Source: Ministeria vibrans ATCC 50519 (Eukaryota; Protista; Filasterea). From it: a stretch of 43,932 nt of DNA. The translations under genes and the position numbers were made by a program. This document shows positions 9,515 through 16,168 of the stretch, one piece after another. A model generated the notes under the pieces. The model was not told the origin of the DNA. It worked only from the letters and a program-made list of their open reading frames with translations, and searched no databases. Within the stretch, counting starts at the first letter, position 1. The number at the start of each line of letters is the position of its first letter. The DNA lies in the NCBI GenBank assembly GCA_943704425.1, contig CALSCP010002225.1, forward strand, positions 1 through 43,932. The letters run 5' to 3'.

Positions 9515-12500
9515 ATGGCTGATCCATTCAGCTTTGCTCGAAGCAGCGCGCAGCACCAGTCCGTCTATCGCGGCACCAAAGACTCCGTGGCGGCAAGTTC
9601 GGCCGGTGACTTTGATCATGGAGTACGCAGCACCCACGCCACGCCTCGCTGCCACTCTCATCTCACCCTGTGCGTTGTTGCTTTGTGTTTTGCCTTCCGC
9701 AGCCCGAAATGTCGGAAAGCATCCGGACGCGGAGGGACCGCATCTTTACTGACACCATCTCCTGCCCCGTCAAATTCGCAAAACAAACGGGTATGGGCTC
9801 GCCACATTGCCTCATTCGCTGCGGCACACTCACCCATTCCATGTATTGTGTCACTCAGCCAAGAAACGCGACGATCGCTGGGCCGTCGTCTGTGAGGATT
9901 TCCGTATCCGCATTTTCGTATGACTCGTTTTTTTTTCTTTTTTTTTTGCCTAACTTTAACTTTGATGACCGCTTCGTTTGCCCTTGTTTGTGCGTGTAGG
10001 CCAGCAAGAAGGACGCTCCACGAAAGCCCCTGCACCGCTTCCACGCATCCGACTTTTACATTCGCGAGTAGGAGAGGAGAGAGAGAGAGAGAGAGGAGAG
10101 ACTCTCGGGACCTAAAGAGGGTGTTTTGTTGCAGTCCCGTTTCGCGCGAGATTTGTCTCTTTGACCTGGTCCAGAGCAAGATTTACATCATGCAGCTTGA
10201 AGCGATTGCCTTTAATGACTTTTGCATTGCGCTGAGGCGTTGTCGGTAACGTAGAGCGAGAGAAGCAAAGGCATTGCAACATGGATTGTATTCATACTAC
10301 TATCATGATTGTGCGTTGTAGCGAGAACGGATCGATTCCACAGGCGCACTCTCTATGCGACGAGCGCGTGCACAAGGTGGGCTGGGTCTACTTGTGTGCC
10401 GGCAAAGGGTTTGATCCAGCCTACGTCTTTGTCATGGTCGTCAACATGCACTTGATCATGTGCCAATCGTCAGTGGTAAGACAAATGTTTTTGCAATCAC
10501 CCCTTCTCTCTCTATTACTTTTTGTTTCTCCCTCAACCCTCCTTACTCTGTTGCTTTGTTTCTCCCTCACCCCTCCGCCCTCTATTTACCTTTTGTTTCC
10601 CTCACCCCTCCTATCTTTCTCGCTCGATTTTGCGGCACAGTTTGACGCAAACCAGACGGCGTGGCGTGCACTGATGATCGCTGAGTGTGGCTTTGAGCAG
10701 ACCAACACGGGATTTATCATCTGCGATCGTGACTCCGTCTACACCTTTATCTGCTCCGATTCGGAGATCCCCGAGTGGCGCGAGGCCCTCTTTGAGTCGA
10801 TCCGCCTCAGTGCCGCTCGTGTCATCTCTACGTGGGGCTCATGGAACAACGAAAAGGCCTACCTCTCGCTCAACATCAGCGATGGCATTTCCATCCGTCA
10901 AAACCGAATTGATGTAAATCCTATTCATTGCATGTACACAACCGTATAGATATCTTCTCTGTTGCGTTTGTAGGGCACTGAAGTGTGGCACCACGACTTT
11001 TTGACACTTCCACCGGCGGAAACGATGCGATTGACAGCCCTGCAGATTGAAAAAGTCGAAGCGGGCGGCGCAAGCAAACGCCCCATCATCTACTACATCA
11101 TCAAGGTGGGTACCACCAGCACCCGTGTCTCCCGCTTGTTCATCACTCCTTCTCTCGCTCCCTTATTCTCTTCTTTTCCTCCTATGTTCTGTGTATCTGC
11201 CCTACGTCACCGATTGTTTTCGCTGCCATCTCTCCTCACACTCTTACGCATACATGCAGATTACCATGCTTAATTATGCAAAGCTGTTGTGGGACCATGC
11301 CGTACAGCTGCTGCGCTCGCTCAAGGACGAGCCGTGGTTCCTGGCCAACCCGGAAGAGCGCGACATTAATCAACAGCTGAGCCGCTCGGACCGCAACTTT
11401 GTCGTCGCGTGGAAGGACGCCGTGCCCCTCGATTTCTGGCTGGCCTTTCGCACGCAGTCGGGCGCTGTTGACTACACTCACATTCAGAATACGTGGGACT
11501 TTTGCTACATGGACGGTCGTGAGTACCTCAGCATTGTCGATTTGGTACGATCCTGTTTATCGTCTGAACTTGCACACTCGTCGTACTTAACACAAAAAAT
11601 TCGCATAATTATAGGTGGATGAGCACAGCGTGATCCCCATTGAAAAGTACCGCGAATGCCTGCGGTGCCCTCGGCCCTCGGCGACATCTATGGCACGCAA
11701 CCAACAGGATCTGTCCGACACACAGCGCAAGATCCGCGCAGGCACATATGGCTATGCGGGCGCACTTTTGTCGACATCCGGCAAGCGCGACTACAATGAG
11801 ATGGGCGAGCTCAGGGTGCCACGCATGCCCCCTCCACCCTCCAGTGTGTACGTATATATATGTGTGTGTGTGTGTGAGTATATATATAATTATATATATA
11901 TATTGTGTGTGTGGGTGTCTTTGTGGTGTGTGTATCTGTGCCAGAGGCAGTGTGGTGGTCCTTACGGTGGTTTGTATTCATTCTCGTCCTTTAGTGCGTC
12001 GAGTGAGACCGCAAAGTCTTTGCCCGACCCTGTGGCCTTGTCACGCGCCCTTGCCAATGCCATGGTCACCAACAACGACTACGGCAATCTCCCCGATAAC
12101 GACGACGACGACGGTATTGTCGAGATGCGCAGTCGTGAGCGACTGCGCGTTGCCGCCGCCCGTGAGGTATGAAATCCCCTCGCCCGTTTCCCAAACAACC
12201 ACTAATCTCCCTCCCAATAACCCAGTCTGGGGCGATTGACCGCACGAGTATGGCGCCGGGCAAATTCTTGTTGCGCTCTGGTGACTTTCTCGAGGGAGGA
12301 AGCGTGGAGCTTAGCGAGGACTATCTGGAGTTTGACGAAGGTGGCGTGACCACCAACTACGACAACCAGCCCGAGACAAGCAACTACAGCAACAATGCCG
12401 CCGGCGGATTCCGCCACGACTACGGCAACATGGGTCCGTCCGACGACGACTACCTGGAGATGGACGTGGGCGGCGCCGAGTCGCAGTCGCTTAAGGCCAT

Positions 12501-13462
12501 GCCTTTGGGCTTGCCCCCGCAGCCCGGGAGCCACACGATGCAGCGGCAGCAAGAGTCAGGCATTTATGCAGCACCGTCTGCGATGGCGCCCGAAAACGAC
12601 GACGAGGACATGAATGTTGCGACGGGGATCATCGCGGGCGCACCCGCCTACCTCTTTTTGCAGTACCAGCAGCGTCAGCGCAGCGAACAGCGCGGCCTCT
12701 ACAGCACTATGCACTACCGCGAGCGACAGGAACGCTCTAAAATCTACGCGGCTGCCAATGTGTATGCGGCGACCGCGGCGGCTGGGGGCGGTGTGCGCGG
12801 GTCGTCCGCACTGGATCTGCTGCGGACGTCGGCTCAGGCAACGTCCGAGGGCAAGGTGCGCGACGCCGATATGCAGGCGGTGTACGACCTGCTCGCGTCG
12901 ATGGACACGACGCTGCGCGACTCAGAGAATCGCGACTACGACCCACTGCCGCTCAGTCGCGAGTCGGCCGTGAATGATCCCGACTACGACCCCATCGCAT
13001 CGTCTGCACGGTCGTCGCGCGTCGGCGGCGAGGGAGCCGACGGCGCCAGCGTCATTTACCAGGCGCGCTCGTCGGCCACGTACGACGACACCGAAGACGT
13101 GCCTTCCATCTATGGCGAGCTCAACTACGAGCCGTACGAGTCATCCATCTATGACGCACCCGGCCAGGTTGCCGCCGATCCCATTCCCGTCGACGATGCT
13201 CATTACGGAGGTACATTATTATATTATAATAATTATTATTTTATTGCGTGCTGGAGGAGAAAGCGATAGAGATATTATATTGACCCTTTTCCATTGTGTA
13301 GTTCCCGCGTACGAACGGTACAAACTACAAAGCAGCGACGACAAGTTTTCGACGTACCGCAGTCTCAAGCGACCCGCTCCCAAGGCCAAGGATGCCGGAT
13401 CGATTCGCGACTTCTTCTCTGCGCGCGTGTCGGGCTCGCTCGAGATGGGTGGAAGTTCGTAG
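9515..13462 (+). CDS. Multi-exon signalling adaptor: PH-like domain(s), SH2-like domain and Tyr-motif-rich disordered tail
   Basis: PH C-terminal pattern GFIICDRDSVYTFICSDSEIPEWREAL; SH2-like EPWF...NFVVAW...FWLAF...YLSIVDLV; about 20 acidic-context Tyr motifs. Internal exon boundaries are approximate. Confidence 0.65.
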
Positions 13463-13614
13463 AAGAGGAGGGTGAAAAAAAAAAAAAAGTAATCGTGTGC
13501 GAGTGACTGTGGTAAACGTGTGTGGCTCGAGAGTAGAATGAAAGCTAAGAAAGAAAGAAACAAAAAAAGGTGTTTGTTGCATTATATTGAATCTGTGATG
13601 TTGCACACAATCGC

Positions 13615-13672
13615 ATCAGACGATGAGGGTTCTTTCGCAGAGACGAAAAGACTTTCCCGCAAACGTCGTCAC
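13615..13672 (-). promoter_or_regulatory. SECIS element (type II, GUGA variant) in the 3' UTR of the YHS gene
   Basis: Transcript strand reads G-UGAC-GACGUUUGCGGG-AAAG-UCUUUUCG-UCUCUG-CGAAAGA-A-CCCUCAUCGUC-UGAU: UGAN/NGAN quartet, 12-nt helix II arm, unpaired AAA and an apical mini-stem. Confidence 0.8.
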
Positions 13673-13808
13673 AAAAAAGAAGAAAGTGGGGAAGAAAGTG
13701 TGAAACGGAGAGTCATAATAATAATAATTTATAGTTTTTGTGTCGTGGTTTGTGTTGTTGACTTTTGTTGTCGCGCATGTTGCAAAACGTGATAAACAGA
13801 CGGATTGT

Positions 13809-14489
13809 TTAGACGTTGATGTCCACTGGGCCCACTGTTGCGTTCGCCGAGCCGTACCACGCCGTCCAGTTGTCGTTAGCAACAGTGATGTAGTGTGACT
13901 CGCGTTCCTTCCACATTGCCTAATGAATGATTGGTTGTGAGCGATGATTAATTGTAAGTGTGTGAGTTCATGTTGAGGGGGTGATTTCAATTTTCTCGTT
14001 CTCTCTTGTGAGTCTTGCTGTAACATACTGCAATCTTTTCGTCGTAGTTCATGTAGAGTGTTCCATTCACAAGCGCTGTACATACGCAGTCAGTTGAAGA
14101 AGAAAAAAAGAACAATCATAAGCAGTCAGTTGAAAGGTCAACACAAACAAACACAGTATCGTACTCCACGCCTTATGCACTGGCTCCAGGCCGCCCTCGA
14201 CGGCGACCGCCCAAGATCAGTATCCACCGTACTTGGGGACAAAGGCAAGGGGGGCAGCAGCAAACTGGTCTCGGTTGGCGGCGGAGGCAAAGTGATAGTG
14301 CATCTGGCGCCATGTCGCGTTGAACGCAGACACGCCCAGCACAGCCGCATCGGCCGCCTTCAGCGAGCGGAACGCAACCACATCAACCCCGTTGAGTGCC
14401 AGTCCACCTGGCGTCTGTGGCGGCATTGGAGGGGCTGGAGGGGCCGCACACGACAGCGCAACAAGTGCCAAGACAACTCCAAGGATCAT
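13809..14489 (-). CDS. Secreted YHS-domain selenoprotein (UGA at 14217-14219 read as Sec); exons 14489-14165, 14075-14029, 13919-13809
   Basis: Signal peptide, then ALNGVDVVAF, YHFASAANRDQFAAAP, PKYGGY*SWAV, AW|TLVNGTLYMNY and WKERESHYITVANDNW. Family similarity continues in frame after the TGA, and a SECIS-like hairpin lies downstream. Confidence 0.85.
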
Positions 14490-14627
14490 AAAATAAATAA
14501 AATATAATAATTGATATTATTTTGATTGAATGAATAATTGAATAGTGAATGACGAATGTTGAAACGTGAAAAATTATTGTACAATATGTACGAAATCTGT
14601 ACACAACAAAATTAACACGAAAAATTA

Positions 14628-16168
14628 TCAGTGTCTCTTCTCTGCGACTTCTCCTTGTAGCGCCTCTTCGTGAAAGAGCGAGTGTGCCTCAGCACAAAAG
14701 AGAGGCAGTCTTTCGTGACACACTGGACACTCAAAGACGTCCGTGCCTTCTACATCGTCTTCTTCTTCCTCCTCCCCTCTTTCGTCTTCCTCTGATCCCT
14801 CGTCATAGCTTTCACCTTGGTCTTCACCGTCAAAAGACTCCGTCTTCTTTGTCGTGGCAAAAAACGCAGTGATGTCACTGCGTGTGCTCATCACTTGGTC
14901 AAAATTGCAGACGGCCACATTCAAAAGAGTAATGTGAAAGGGCTCGCGCACAATCAGCTGTCGCAAGAGACGCACCGACATGGAGTAGAGCAGCGCCGCA
15001 CCAGTCTCGCCTCCGGTAACGACTGTGCGCGGGAGAGGGCTCGACTTAGAGGTGCGTCGCGAGTGGTAGTGGGCCGTTGAGCCCTTGGCAACGTGCTCGA
15101 GGGGACGCGCGTGGCGCAGCGACAAGCGGAGGGTGCGCGGAATACGCTCACGATGACGATGGTACTCGACACTAATGCGTTGCCACAGGTGCTGTGTGAG
15201 CTGGGCCAATCGCGCCTCTGCGTTTTTGTAATTGAAGCACTGTCGAAAGCTATCCTCCACCGAGAGCTGCTTTGGCGGCGCTGCGGGCGTCACTTCTTCT
15301 GTGTCCACGCCACGTGCAAGCTCAAACAACCGATCGCCCACCACCACACCAAACTTTTCAACAAGACACGCACGCGACAGTGACAAGAGTTCTTCACGCG
15401 TTTCCACTTGCAATTCGTCACGTAATCGACGCGCCGTTGAATGCCCCACTCCAATAATGTCACGAGCACGGAGGTCAGCAAGAACCAATTCGGTCGCGGA
15501 CGGCACCACCGCCGTCTGGTCATTGGGTTTGTGGCGACCACTCACGAGTTTGGCCATGAGTTTGTTCCAAGCGACACCGCCACACGTTTGCATGCCCGTG
15601 CGCTCCTCAATTTCCTCTCGAATCTCCTTTGCCAGCTGCGCACCCACCCGCAGTCTATCCACACAATCGCACGACGGTCCAATTGTACACGCACTACGGG
15701 CGCTGCCCACAACGTGCGCCTGCCATTCGAGTGGAGACGAAGAAGCTGCAGTCAGCCTTTGACGCACTAAATCACTCACGTCGAGAAAGAACTCCTCGAG
15801 ACCCAGACGCTCAACGCGAGAGGCCCATCGACTGACAATTTCAAAGATAGCTTCGCTTGCAGCACGGTAGGGCGTGAGGTCCTCGCCGCAGATGAGACGA
15901 AGGTGCGGACAGATCTTCAGTGCCTCCGCTACTTTGGTCATTTTTCGCACGCCCAGATCGCGAGCGACGTAGTTCGACGTGACCAGTAAGTACTTTTGAT
16001 ACACTCCAAACGGTACGGTACGTAGTGAGTCGTCGGCAACCATGTGGACCTGTGTAGAAGACACATTATGATCGGGTGTTTGTTTTTGTTTGTTTGTTGT
16101 GTGTTCGCTACTTGCGCGTAGAAGCAATTCACGTCGATATGGATGATCACACGTGTATGATCATCCAT
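14628..16168 (-). CDS. POLI: Y-family DNA polymerase iota; intron 16050-16111
   Basis: IIHIDVNCFYAQV, QKYLLVTSNYVAR, GEDLTPYR, VERLGLEE and NKLMAKLVSGRHKPNDQT; C-terminal CPVC...H...H finger. Confidence 0.88.

Follow-up and report, generated by a model that had tools for sequence, protein, structure and literature searches.

A spliced eukaryotic gene that very probably encodes a selenoprotein of the bacterial YHS-domain family, with a GUGA-type SECIS element in its 3'UTR

The window considered here is the whole stretch of DNA that was analyzed, 43,932 nt in length, and the gene under discussion occupies its minus strand with three coding exons, from an ATG at 14489 to a TAA at 13809, and with an in-frame TGA at 14219-14217. 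Read up to this triplet, the ORF (14489..14217, minus strand) specifies 90 amino acids and ends in ...FVPKYGGY, which reproduces both the coordinates and the reading of the preliminary description, namely a 90-residue ORF that stops after PKYGGY at the TGA of 14217-14219; past the TGA, the same reading frame continues as SWAVAVEGGLEPVHKAW. An in-frame stop is located just 5' of the ATG, the stop-to-stop fragment starting at 14516, and the coding parts add up to 325 + 47 + 111 = 483 nt, i.e., 160 codons and a stop; the TGA is codon 91. The upstream neighbor, at 14628-16127 on the minus strand, encodes a DNA polymerase of the Y family, iota type, whose best matches are from an ichthyosporean (Nk52) and from animals, with 36-38% identity, which hints at a host related to animals. 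The features of the gene are the following:

14490..14512, minus strand: 5'UTR, minimum extent, from an X1 transcript contig that spans 14165-14512
14165..14489, minus strand: exon 1 coding part, with the putative leader, the first YHS-like unit, the proposed Sec codon and the start of the second unit
14217..14219, minus strand: TGA, proposed Sec codon 91, aligning with Cys130 of P0129 and with position 98 of the custom HMM
14076..14164, minus strand: intron 1, 89 nt, GT..AG, phase 1 (GTACGA...TACAG), joint 14075/14165 in RNA
14029..14075, minus strand: exon 2, 47 nt, ...LVNGTLYMNYDEKIA, with RNA joints on both sides
13920..14028, minus strand: intron 2, 109 nt, GT..AG, phase 0 (GTATGT...TTAG), joint 13918/9 to 14028/9 in RNA
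13809..13919, minus strand: exon 3 coding part, AMWKERES...DINV, with the TAA at 13811-13809
13612..13676, minus strand: SECIS element of form 2 in the 3'UTR, matched by a covariance model derived from SPS2 and contained in transcript contigs

According to an HMM search, the gene is present in a single copy in the genome; a second weak match, on C1009 (E 0.009), was examined as a paralogue and rejected because it consists of low-complexity sequence. The only product of the gene in the public protein catalogue is P0001, with 90 residues, in agreement with the earlier expectation that ordinary gene callers would truncate the protein.

Evidence for transcription and splicing comes from the assembled contigs of four runs, belonging to four studies, that were placed on 13300-14800. 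The runs are labeled only as "RNA?", and the transcript nature of their contigs is shown by the splicing itself when compared with the intron-containing genome; these contigs give neither transcript ends nor expression levels. In all four runs, the stretches 14076-14164 and 13920-14028 are exactly skipped, and both of them read CT..AC on the plus strand, that is, GT..AG on the strand of the gene; the limit of exon 1 at 14165 is likewise set by RNA joints. The two GT-AG introns and the product of about 160 residues, which had been predicted from the genomic letters, are thus recovered exactly, with 160 codons, and the exons behind the TGA are expressed and spliced as foreseen. Some low-depth contigs of X1 retain intron 1. 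The TGA itself is covered by contigs of X1, X5 and X6 with zero differing letters, and the same 90-aa ORF with the same stop is found, at 99.95-100% identity, in three independent public DNA contigs (L027-L029), consisting of one Logan assembly and two ENA metagenome scaffolds. These three were also considered as transcripts, a possibility that was rejected as they are unspliced genomic DNA; since they share the stop, the TGA is not an assembly error. Hence, the codon is TGA, and neither TGC nor TGT, in the window, in the three DNA contigs and in the transcripts of three runs. All the public copies of the gene are at least 99% identical, which precludes tests of covariation or dN/dS.

Regarding the 3' side, contigs that start from exon 3 extend to 13617 in X5 and past 13300 in X1 and X8, and in the latter two runs they enter a convergent gene on the plus strand (ORF 12169-13269); either the 3'UTRs of the two convergent genes overlap, or these contigs were merged. 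In addition, one X1 contig of 126 nt (depth 13) joins 13953 to 14048 with a GT..AG on the plus strand, antisense to the gene discussed here, and may come from the convergent upstream gene, as a read-through transcript that has been spliced.

To appreciate where the TGA falls, it is necessary to consider the protein family. Residues 30-90 of exon 1a, the part of exon 1 that precedes the TGA, match positions 2-59 of the 113 positions of NCBIfam NF041384 with 54 bits (E 1.7e-14), and the match stops at the TGA. This model bears the name "YHS domain-containing (seleno)protein" and has a curated cut-off of 70 bits for the whole protein, so that the 54 bits refer to the N-terminal half alone, while full-length Cys members reach 156-167 bits. 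With the Pfam YHS model PF04945, exon 1a obtains 13.6 bits (E 0.069) and does not reach the gathering threshold of 30.3; the relation to YHS domains is supported only by the NCBIfam name, by weak Pfam matches of the relatives, and by a 28-residue match of a homologue model described below. A phmmer search, run exhaustively on 1.84 billion representatives, returned 478 relatives. After the motif GG[YFW], Cys follows in 144 of the 183 domains that reach the last residue of the query, 11 of the 183 stop at this point, and the remaining ones carry D, S or G in this column; P0002 and P0003, the two closest word-indexed matches, both end in PKYGGY. In the alignment of 46 Cys members, Cys130 is invariant (46/46), as are D78, G91, F106, F115, P119, P124, G127, G128 and L154. 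As judged from these alignments, the TGA falls in the column of the invariant Cys of NF041384, which upholds what had been proposed on the conserved Cys before any search.

The region beyond the TGA was evaluated by searching each exon piece singly, rather than as a joined protein. A custom HMM, built from the 46 Cys members, was run against the 1764 stop-to-stop fragments of the window, and its best match among them was exon 1a (positions 11-97, E 2e-25), the Cys being position 98. The second-best was the fragment that contains exon 2 (HMM 116-140, of which the exon 2 part is 116-131; E 0.038), and the third-best was exon 3 (HMM 133-155, E 0.36); these three best fragments are colinear along the gene. 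When aligned with hmmalign, VNGTLYMNYDEKI of exon 2 falls onto the VDGKLYLNYSKKV block (the VDGKLYLNY block), and MWKERESHYITVANDNW onto EWLKDKEENIAKADANW. Exon 1b, the 17 residues behind the TGA, gives an ungapped alignment with residues 131-147 of P0129, directly past Cys130. All the invariant and near-invariant columns are kept, including P144, G152, L154, Y155, W166 and W181, and the gene has two variants, Y82 to F and A131 to S, each of which is found in other members. Taken singly, exons 1b, 2 and 3 are weak (E 0.04-0.4) and lie under the filters of the NCBIfam model; the C-terminal half of the domain, made of the second YHS-like unit and the terminal helix, is present in pieces that are individually weak. 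What carries weight for the downstream homology is the colinearity of the pieces together with frame-preserving RNA splicing and the retention of the invariant residues, with 69 sense codons open past the TGA across two splice junctions that preserve the frame.

The same facts bear on the possibility that the gene is broken, or makes a truncated protein of 90 residues, after a Cys codon became TGA, in which case exons 1b to 3 would be a spliced 3'UTR. A single base separates TGC or TGT from TGA, and the 90-aa P0001 is all that the gene callers give. However, the 69 codons behind the TGA have stayed open with every invariant family residue kept. Moreover, an mRNA whose translation ends prematurely ahead of two introns would normally be degraded, yet this one is well represented in the contigs of four studies. 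Further arguments against this reading are the close likeness of its 3'UTR SECIS to the candidate behind SPS2, and the recurrence of Sec forms at the same column in bacteria and in eukaryote-like contigs, both discussed below; overall, we regard it as very unlikely.

By identity, the closest relatives of the gene are bacterial (51-55%), and the full-length ones are encoded on densely packed bacterial contigs; moreover, the family model is a bacterial NCBIfam. These circumstances would fit a bacterial contaminant or a misassembled bacterial gene. Against it, RNA shows the removal of two GT-AG spliceosomal introns from the gene, the neighbor on the same 44-kb contig is a DNA polymerase iota with eukaryotic best matches, and a eukaryotic SECIS stands in the 3'UTR, whereas in the bacterial Sec forms the reading frame goes on right past the UGA. 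Because of the introns spliced in RNA and of the polymerase iota neighbor, contamination is excluded, and the chance left to it is vanishingly small.

The SECIS element is located about 140 nt 3' of the TAA stop and lies within transcript contigs of X1 and X8 and within that of X5, whose end is at 13617. Its core GUGA is at 13672-13669, an AAA follows 12 nt past the core, and the 3' UGAU is at 13619-13616. In the fold, the GUGA-C is followed by a helix of GACG..UG.GGG with CCC.CA.CGUC, by the unpaired AAA, and by an apical helix of 8 bp, a layout that is of form 2 and of the GUGA type. Since the stability of the hairpin is ordinary with respect to shuffled sequences (z = 0.1), stability alone proves nothing. 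As an independent test, SECIS candidates were located behind three other selenoprotein genes of the same genome:

L010:2584-2639: SECIS candidate behind SPS2, GUGA-type
L019:2121-2177: SECIS candidate behind a Sec-type MsrA, GUGA-type
L020:506-455: SECIS candidate behind SelK, AUGA-type

The SPS2 and MsrA candidates and the element of the window have GUGAC...AAA...UGAUGA in common. MAFFT did not align the three candidates by structure, and the covariance model was built from the SPS2 candidate alone and applied to both strands of the window with the filters off. It matched 13676-13612 over its full length with 35.5 bits (E 1.6e-7), the runner-up in the window having 13.4 bits, and numerous paired positions differ between the SPS2 candidate and the element of the window while the pairing is preserved. 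On the SelK and MsrA candidates, the same model performs poorly (at most 9.5 bits). A pre-filtered run on the whole genome listed SPS2 itself with 100 bits and two other matches with 23.7 and 19.2 bits; this list is incomplete, as the element of the window is not in it. The second-best match of this run, C2642:7281-7335 (L053; 23.7 bits, E 0.23), may be a further SECIS.

The Rfam models gave a different outcome. No match was obtained with the Rfam SECIS models on 13000-14600, nor with SECIS_1 on the whole 29.7-Mb genome, and a search of three known selenoprotein loci with all the Rfam families returned no SECIS. This blank is uninformative, because Rfam misses every SECIS candidate of the genome.

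The genome also contains genes of the Sec machinery, beginning with that of the tRNA:

C2383:9718-9814 (L001:1501-1597): tRNA-Sec gene, from Rfam

The tRNA-Sec scores 55.3 bits, above the Rfam threshold, and has a UCA anticodon in a loop that reads CUUCAA. Directly past the anticodon loop there is an insert of 12 nt, possibly an intron, and because of this insert in the Rfam alignment ARAGORN makes no call at the locus. SepSecS is represented by five exon-wise matches, and the SelD/SPS2 gene (C216:73612-74562, L009/L010) carries a TGA in frame within its N-terminal exon and is therefore itself a selenoprotein; its SECIS candidate follows the last family match at a distance of about 620 nt. Of the components named after the first inspection of the locus, a tRNA-Sec (UCA), SepSecS and a TGA-bearing SPS2 are present. 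A TGA also lies within the family match of two GPx genes and one deiodinase-like gene; for these genes, our own scan found no SECIS within the 1.5-kb flanks.

Besides Sec, the UGA might be read as Cys or Trp, with no involvement of selenium, either by near-cognate decoding or through a variant genetic code. In favor of such a reading, many systems show a low level of near-cognate Cys or Trp insertion at UGA. On the other hand, TGA does not serve as a sense codon in the long ORFs of the window, the genome has a dedicated Sec machinery and a SECIS stands behind the gene, and in-frame TGAs were observed in this genome inside matches to known selenoprotein families. Read-through of this kind is, in our opinion, extremely unlikely.

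On the basis of this evidence, the locus is an expressed and spliced nuclear gene, which with high probability encodes a protein of 160 residues of the NF041384 family with Sec at UGA codon 91. The Cys column, the retained TGA, the SECIS and the machinery all point to the role of UGA as a Sec codon that had been put forward at the outset, and from them we infer the insertion of Sec itself. The recoding mechanism, which appears to be the standard eukaryotic one and is as such well supported, would have the eukaryotic machinery decode UGA codon 91 as Sec under the direction of the GUGA-type form-2 SECIS. Sec would then replace the one Cys that is invariant in the family, in a motif GG[YFW]-C/U, and this site would lie where the second of the two tandem YHS-like units begins. 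As to the location of the protein, an N-terminal hydrophobic leader would direct it to the secretory pathway, much like the signal or Tat peptides of the bacterial relatives.

The hydrophobic leader of the protein, as seen by inspection, ends in ...LSCAAPP, and signal or Tat peptides are found on the bacterial members. Taken together, these features suggest that an extracytoplasmic location is a trait of the family, and the probable secretion of the protein is well grounded in the same two observations, the leader and the exported relatives. The translated exon pieces also contain four N-x-T sequons (NAT, NGT, NWT and NAT). Of the extracellular glyco-selenoprotein that was originally envisaged, the secreted nature remains probable, while the glycosylation, suggested only by the presence of these sequons, is putative.

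For structural information, the Cys member P0129 was modeled with AlphaFold from the alignment of 46 sequences, and the block-mean pLDDT is at least 95 over residues 71-180. In this model, the domain is predicted to be an internal duplication of two tandem units, each made of a beta-hairpin and a helix, the Cys standing where the second one begins. Its one clear match in the PDB is the C-terminal YHS domain of toluene/o-xylene monooxygenase, on which the model superposes over 28 residues with an rmsd of 0.9 and 39% identity. The best match in the PDB to the whole domain is the C-terminal part of mouse radial-spoke-3 (9d2f_A, Z 5.5), which is not informative, and further whole-domain neighbors are the C-terminal parts of trypanosomatid doublet-microtubule proteins (Z 3.8-3.9). 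By sequence, no related chain was found in the PDB, and by structure no solved entry spans the whole domain. In bacteria, the gene neighborhoods disclose no conserved partner.

The comparison with the YHS/TRASH modules (PF04945) is of interest with regard to function. These modules occur at the N-termini of Cu-ATPases, in the C-terminal domain of toluene/phenol hydroxylases, and in the Cu sensor of the M. phlei adenylyl cyclase, and have been proposed to bind Cu (PMC4626032). The predicted hairpin and helix units of the family resemble them, but the family differs in that one invariant Cys/Sec stands in place of the multi-Cys site, in the tandem arrangement of its units, and in a Pfam score below the cut-off. 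The family has one invariant Cys/Sec and no resolving Cys. Given this single residue and the copper binding proposed for the YHS/TRASH modules, we favor, tentatively and at somewhat less than an even chance at best, a role as a single-selenol extracytoplasmic site that would bind a soft metal, e.g., Cu(I); a redox nucleophile is the possible alternative.

Selenoproteins of this family are already known from bacteria. They were first described in 2007 in the delta-proteobacterial symbionts of Olavius algarvensis (PMC1976440), were also reported from the GOS data (PMC2398784), and are included in the prokaryotic reviews of 2022 and 2026, the latter of which assigns them to NF041384 with the motif GxU (PMC13188914). 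The recognition of Sec-bearing bacterial members, mentioned in the preliminary description, goes back to 2007. Compared with these proteins, the gene discussed here shares the pattern ...FASA.NRD.FAA.P..(Y/F).PKYGG(Y/F)-U/C, with Sec proposed at the same column, the C-terminal continuation DP..W.I..G.LYLNY...W...A.(A/D)NW, and an N-terminal signal that looks suited for export. Unlike them, it is nuclear, has two spliceosomal introns, what looks like an ER-type leader and a SECIS in its 3'UTR, whereas in the bacterial Sec forms the frame simply runs on behind the UGA; furthermore, the (D/N)GK of the LYLNY block is replaced by the sequon NGT.

There are precedents for bacterial-type selenoproteins in algae and protists, such as AhpC_b, a methyltransferase, a peroxiredoxin and Trx-fold proteins of Ostreococcus, Thalassiosira and Aureococcus (PMC2375036, PMC7539508). 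The present gene is similar to these cases in that a family otherwise prokaryotic would appear as a Sec protein in an aquatic eukaryote, with a eukaryotic SECIS that is often of the GUGA type (PMC2375036), this type being the rule in Ostreococcus (PMC2375036). A YHS selenoprotein is absent from the main and supplement text of these algal and protist surveys (PMC2375036, PMC7539508), as it is from the main and supplement text of "The algal selenoproteomes", and Lobanov et al. 2007 give no YHS family for Ostreococcus, Thalassiosira or Dictyostelium. "Hypothetical proteins 1-3" of Ostreococcus were examined as members of the same family and rejected, as their sequences are unrelated. A full-text search of the literature for YHS together with selenoprotein, outside of which lies subscription-only work such as the Aureococcus selenoproteome, found no eukaryotic paper, in keeping with the initial remark that this family is not known among the standard eukaryotic ones. 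With respect to the papers searched, the eukaryotic member is new, whereas the family is already known as a bacterial selenoprotein.

Regarding the distribution of the family, a scan of metagenomes for close eukaryotic orthologues returned only bacterial Cys forms. Other Sec-type sequences were found among the proteins that are cut off at the Sec column. One of them, L039/L040, is bacterial, with a TGA, an in-frame continuation and methyltransferase neighbors. At least two further forms look eukaryotic. The first is represented by L041 and L042 (L041:104-917 and L042:87-912, from two Logan runs, GC 0.57), which have the TGA at the same column, followed by 176-180 residues that include a GPSP-repeat linker and a Cys-rich tail; the 3'UTR of L041 holds a candidate AUGA...UGAG hairpin, a possible SECIS. 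The second is represented by L043 and L044 (L043:1275-1788, from TARA, GC 0.64), again with the TGA at the same column and with 83 residues beyond it that include ...YNGTLYMNRG.... In addition, a group of Cys forms (P0120/P0173) is encoded on TARA contigs with a Kelch-repeat neighbor. The best overall match to exon 1 is P0004, from a Heterosigma akashiwo transcript (P0004/P0169/P0170), a protein of 1113 aa in whose five YHS-like repeats the Cys/Sec column is occupied by D or S.

In a quick tree, the gene of the window groups with these sequences, adjoining the bacterial P0029, P0038 and P0084; with 60 columns, an unfinished careful search and SH-aLRT values of 84-87, this tree is suggestive and offers no basis for a claim on the origin. 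A bacterial origin of the eukaryotic gene is plausible. We consider it slightly better than an even chance that the sequences above belong to an unrecognized eukaryotic family, spread over several aquatic protist lineages, with Sec forms (the gene of the window, L041/L042 and L043/L044), Cys forms (P0120/P0173) and Asp/Ser multi-repeat forms (P0004). Such a family would derive from bacterial periplasmic proteins that were refitted with introns, ER leaders and a SECIS in the 3'UTR.

The genes of selenoproteins are systematically misannotated, with UGA taken as a stop, and here a stump of 90 residues was the result. These findings are of interest to specialists of selenoproteins and of annotation, and leave the concepts of the field unchanged. 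On the practical side, a profile of the YHS family is worth including in tools of the Selenoprofiles type, and the Rfam SECIS models have proved blind to the GUGA-type SECIS candidates of this genome. From the biological point of view, a spliced and expressed eukaryotic version with a SECIS indicates that selection acts in two domains of life on the invariant Cys/Sec site, and the gene offers a tractable eukaryotic system for the role of a putatively exported protein with a single selenol. Finally, if the proposed eukaryotic family is real, and if the host is a relative of animals, a family of bacterial type would be added to the holozoan selenoproteome.
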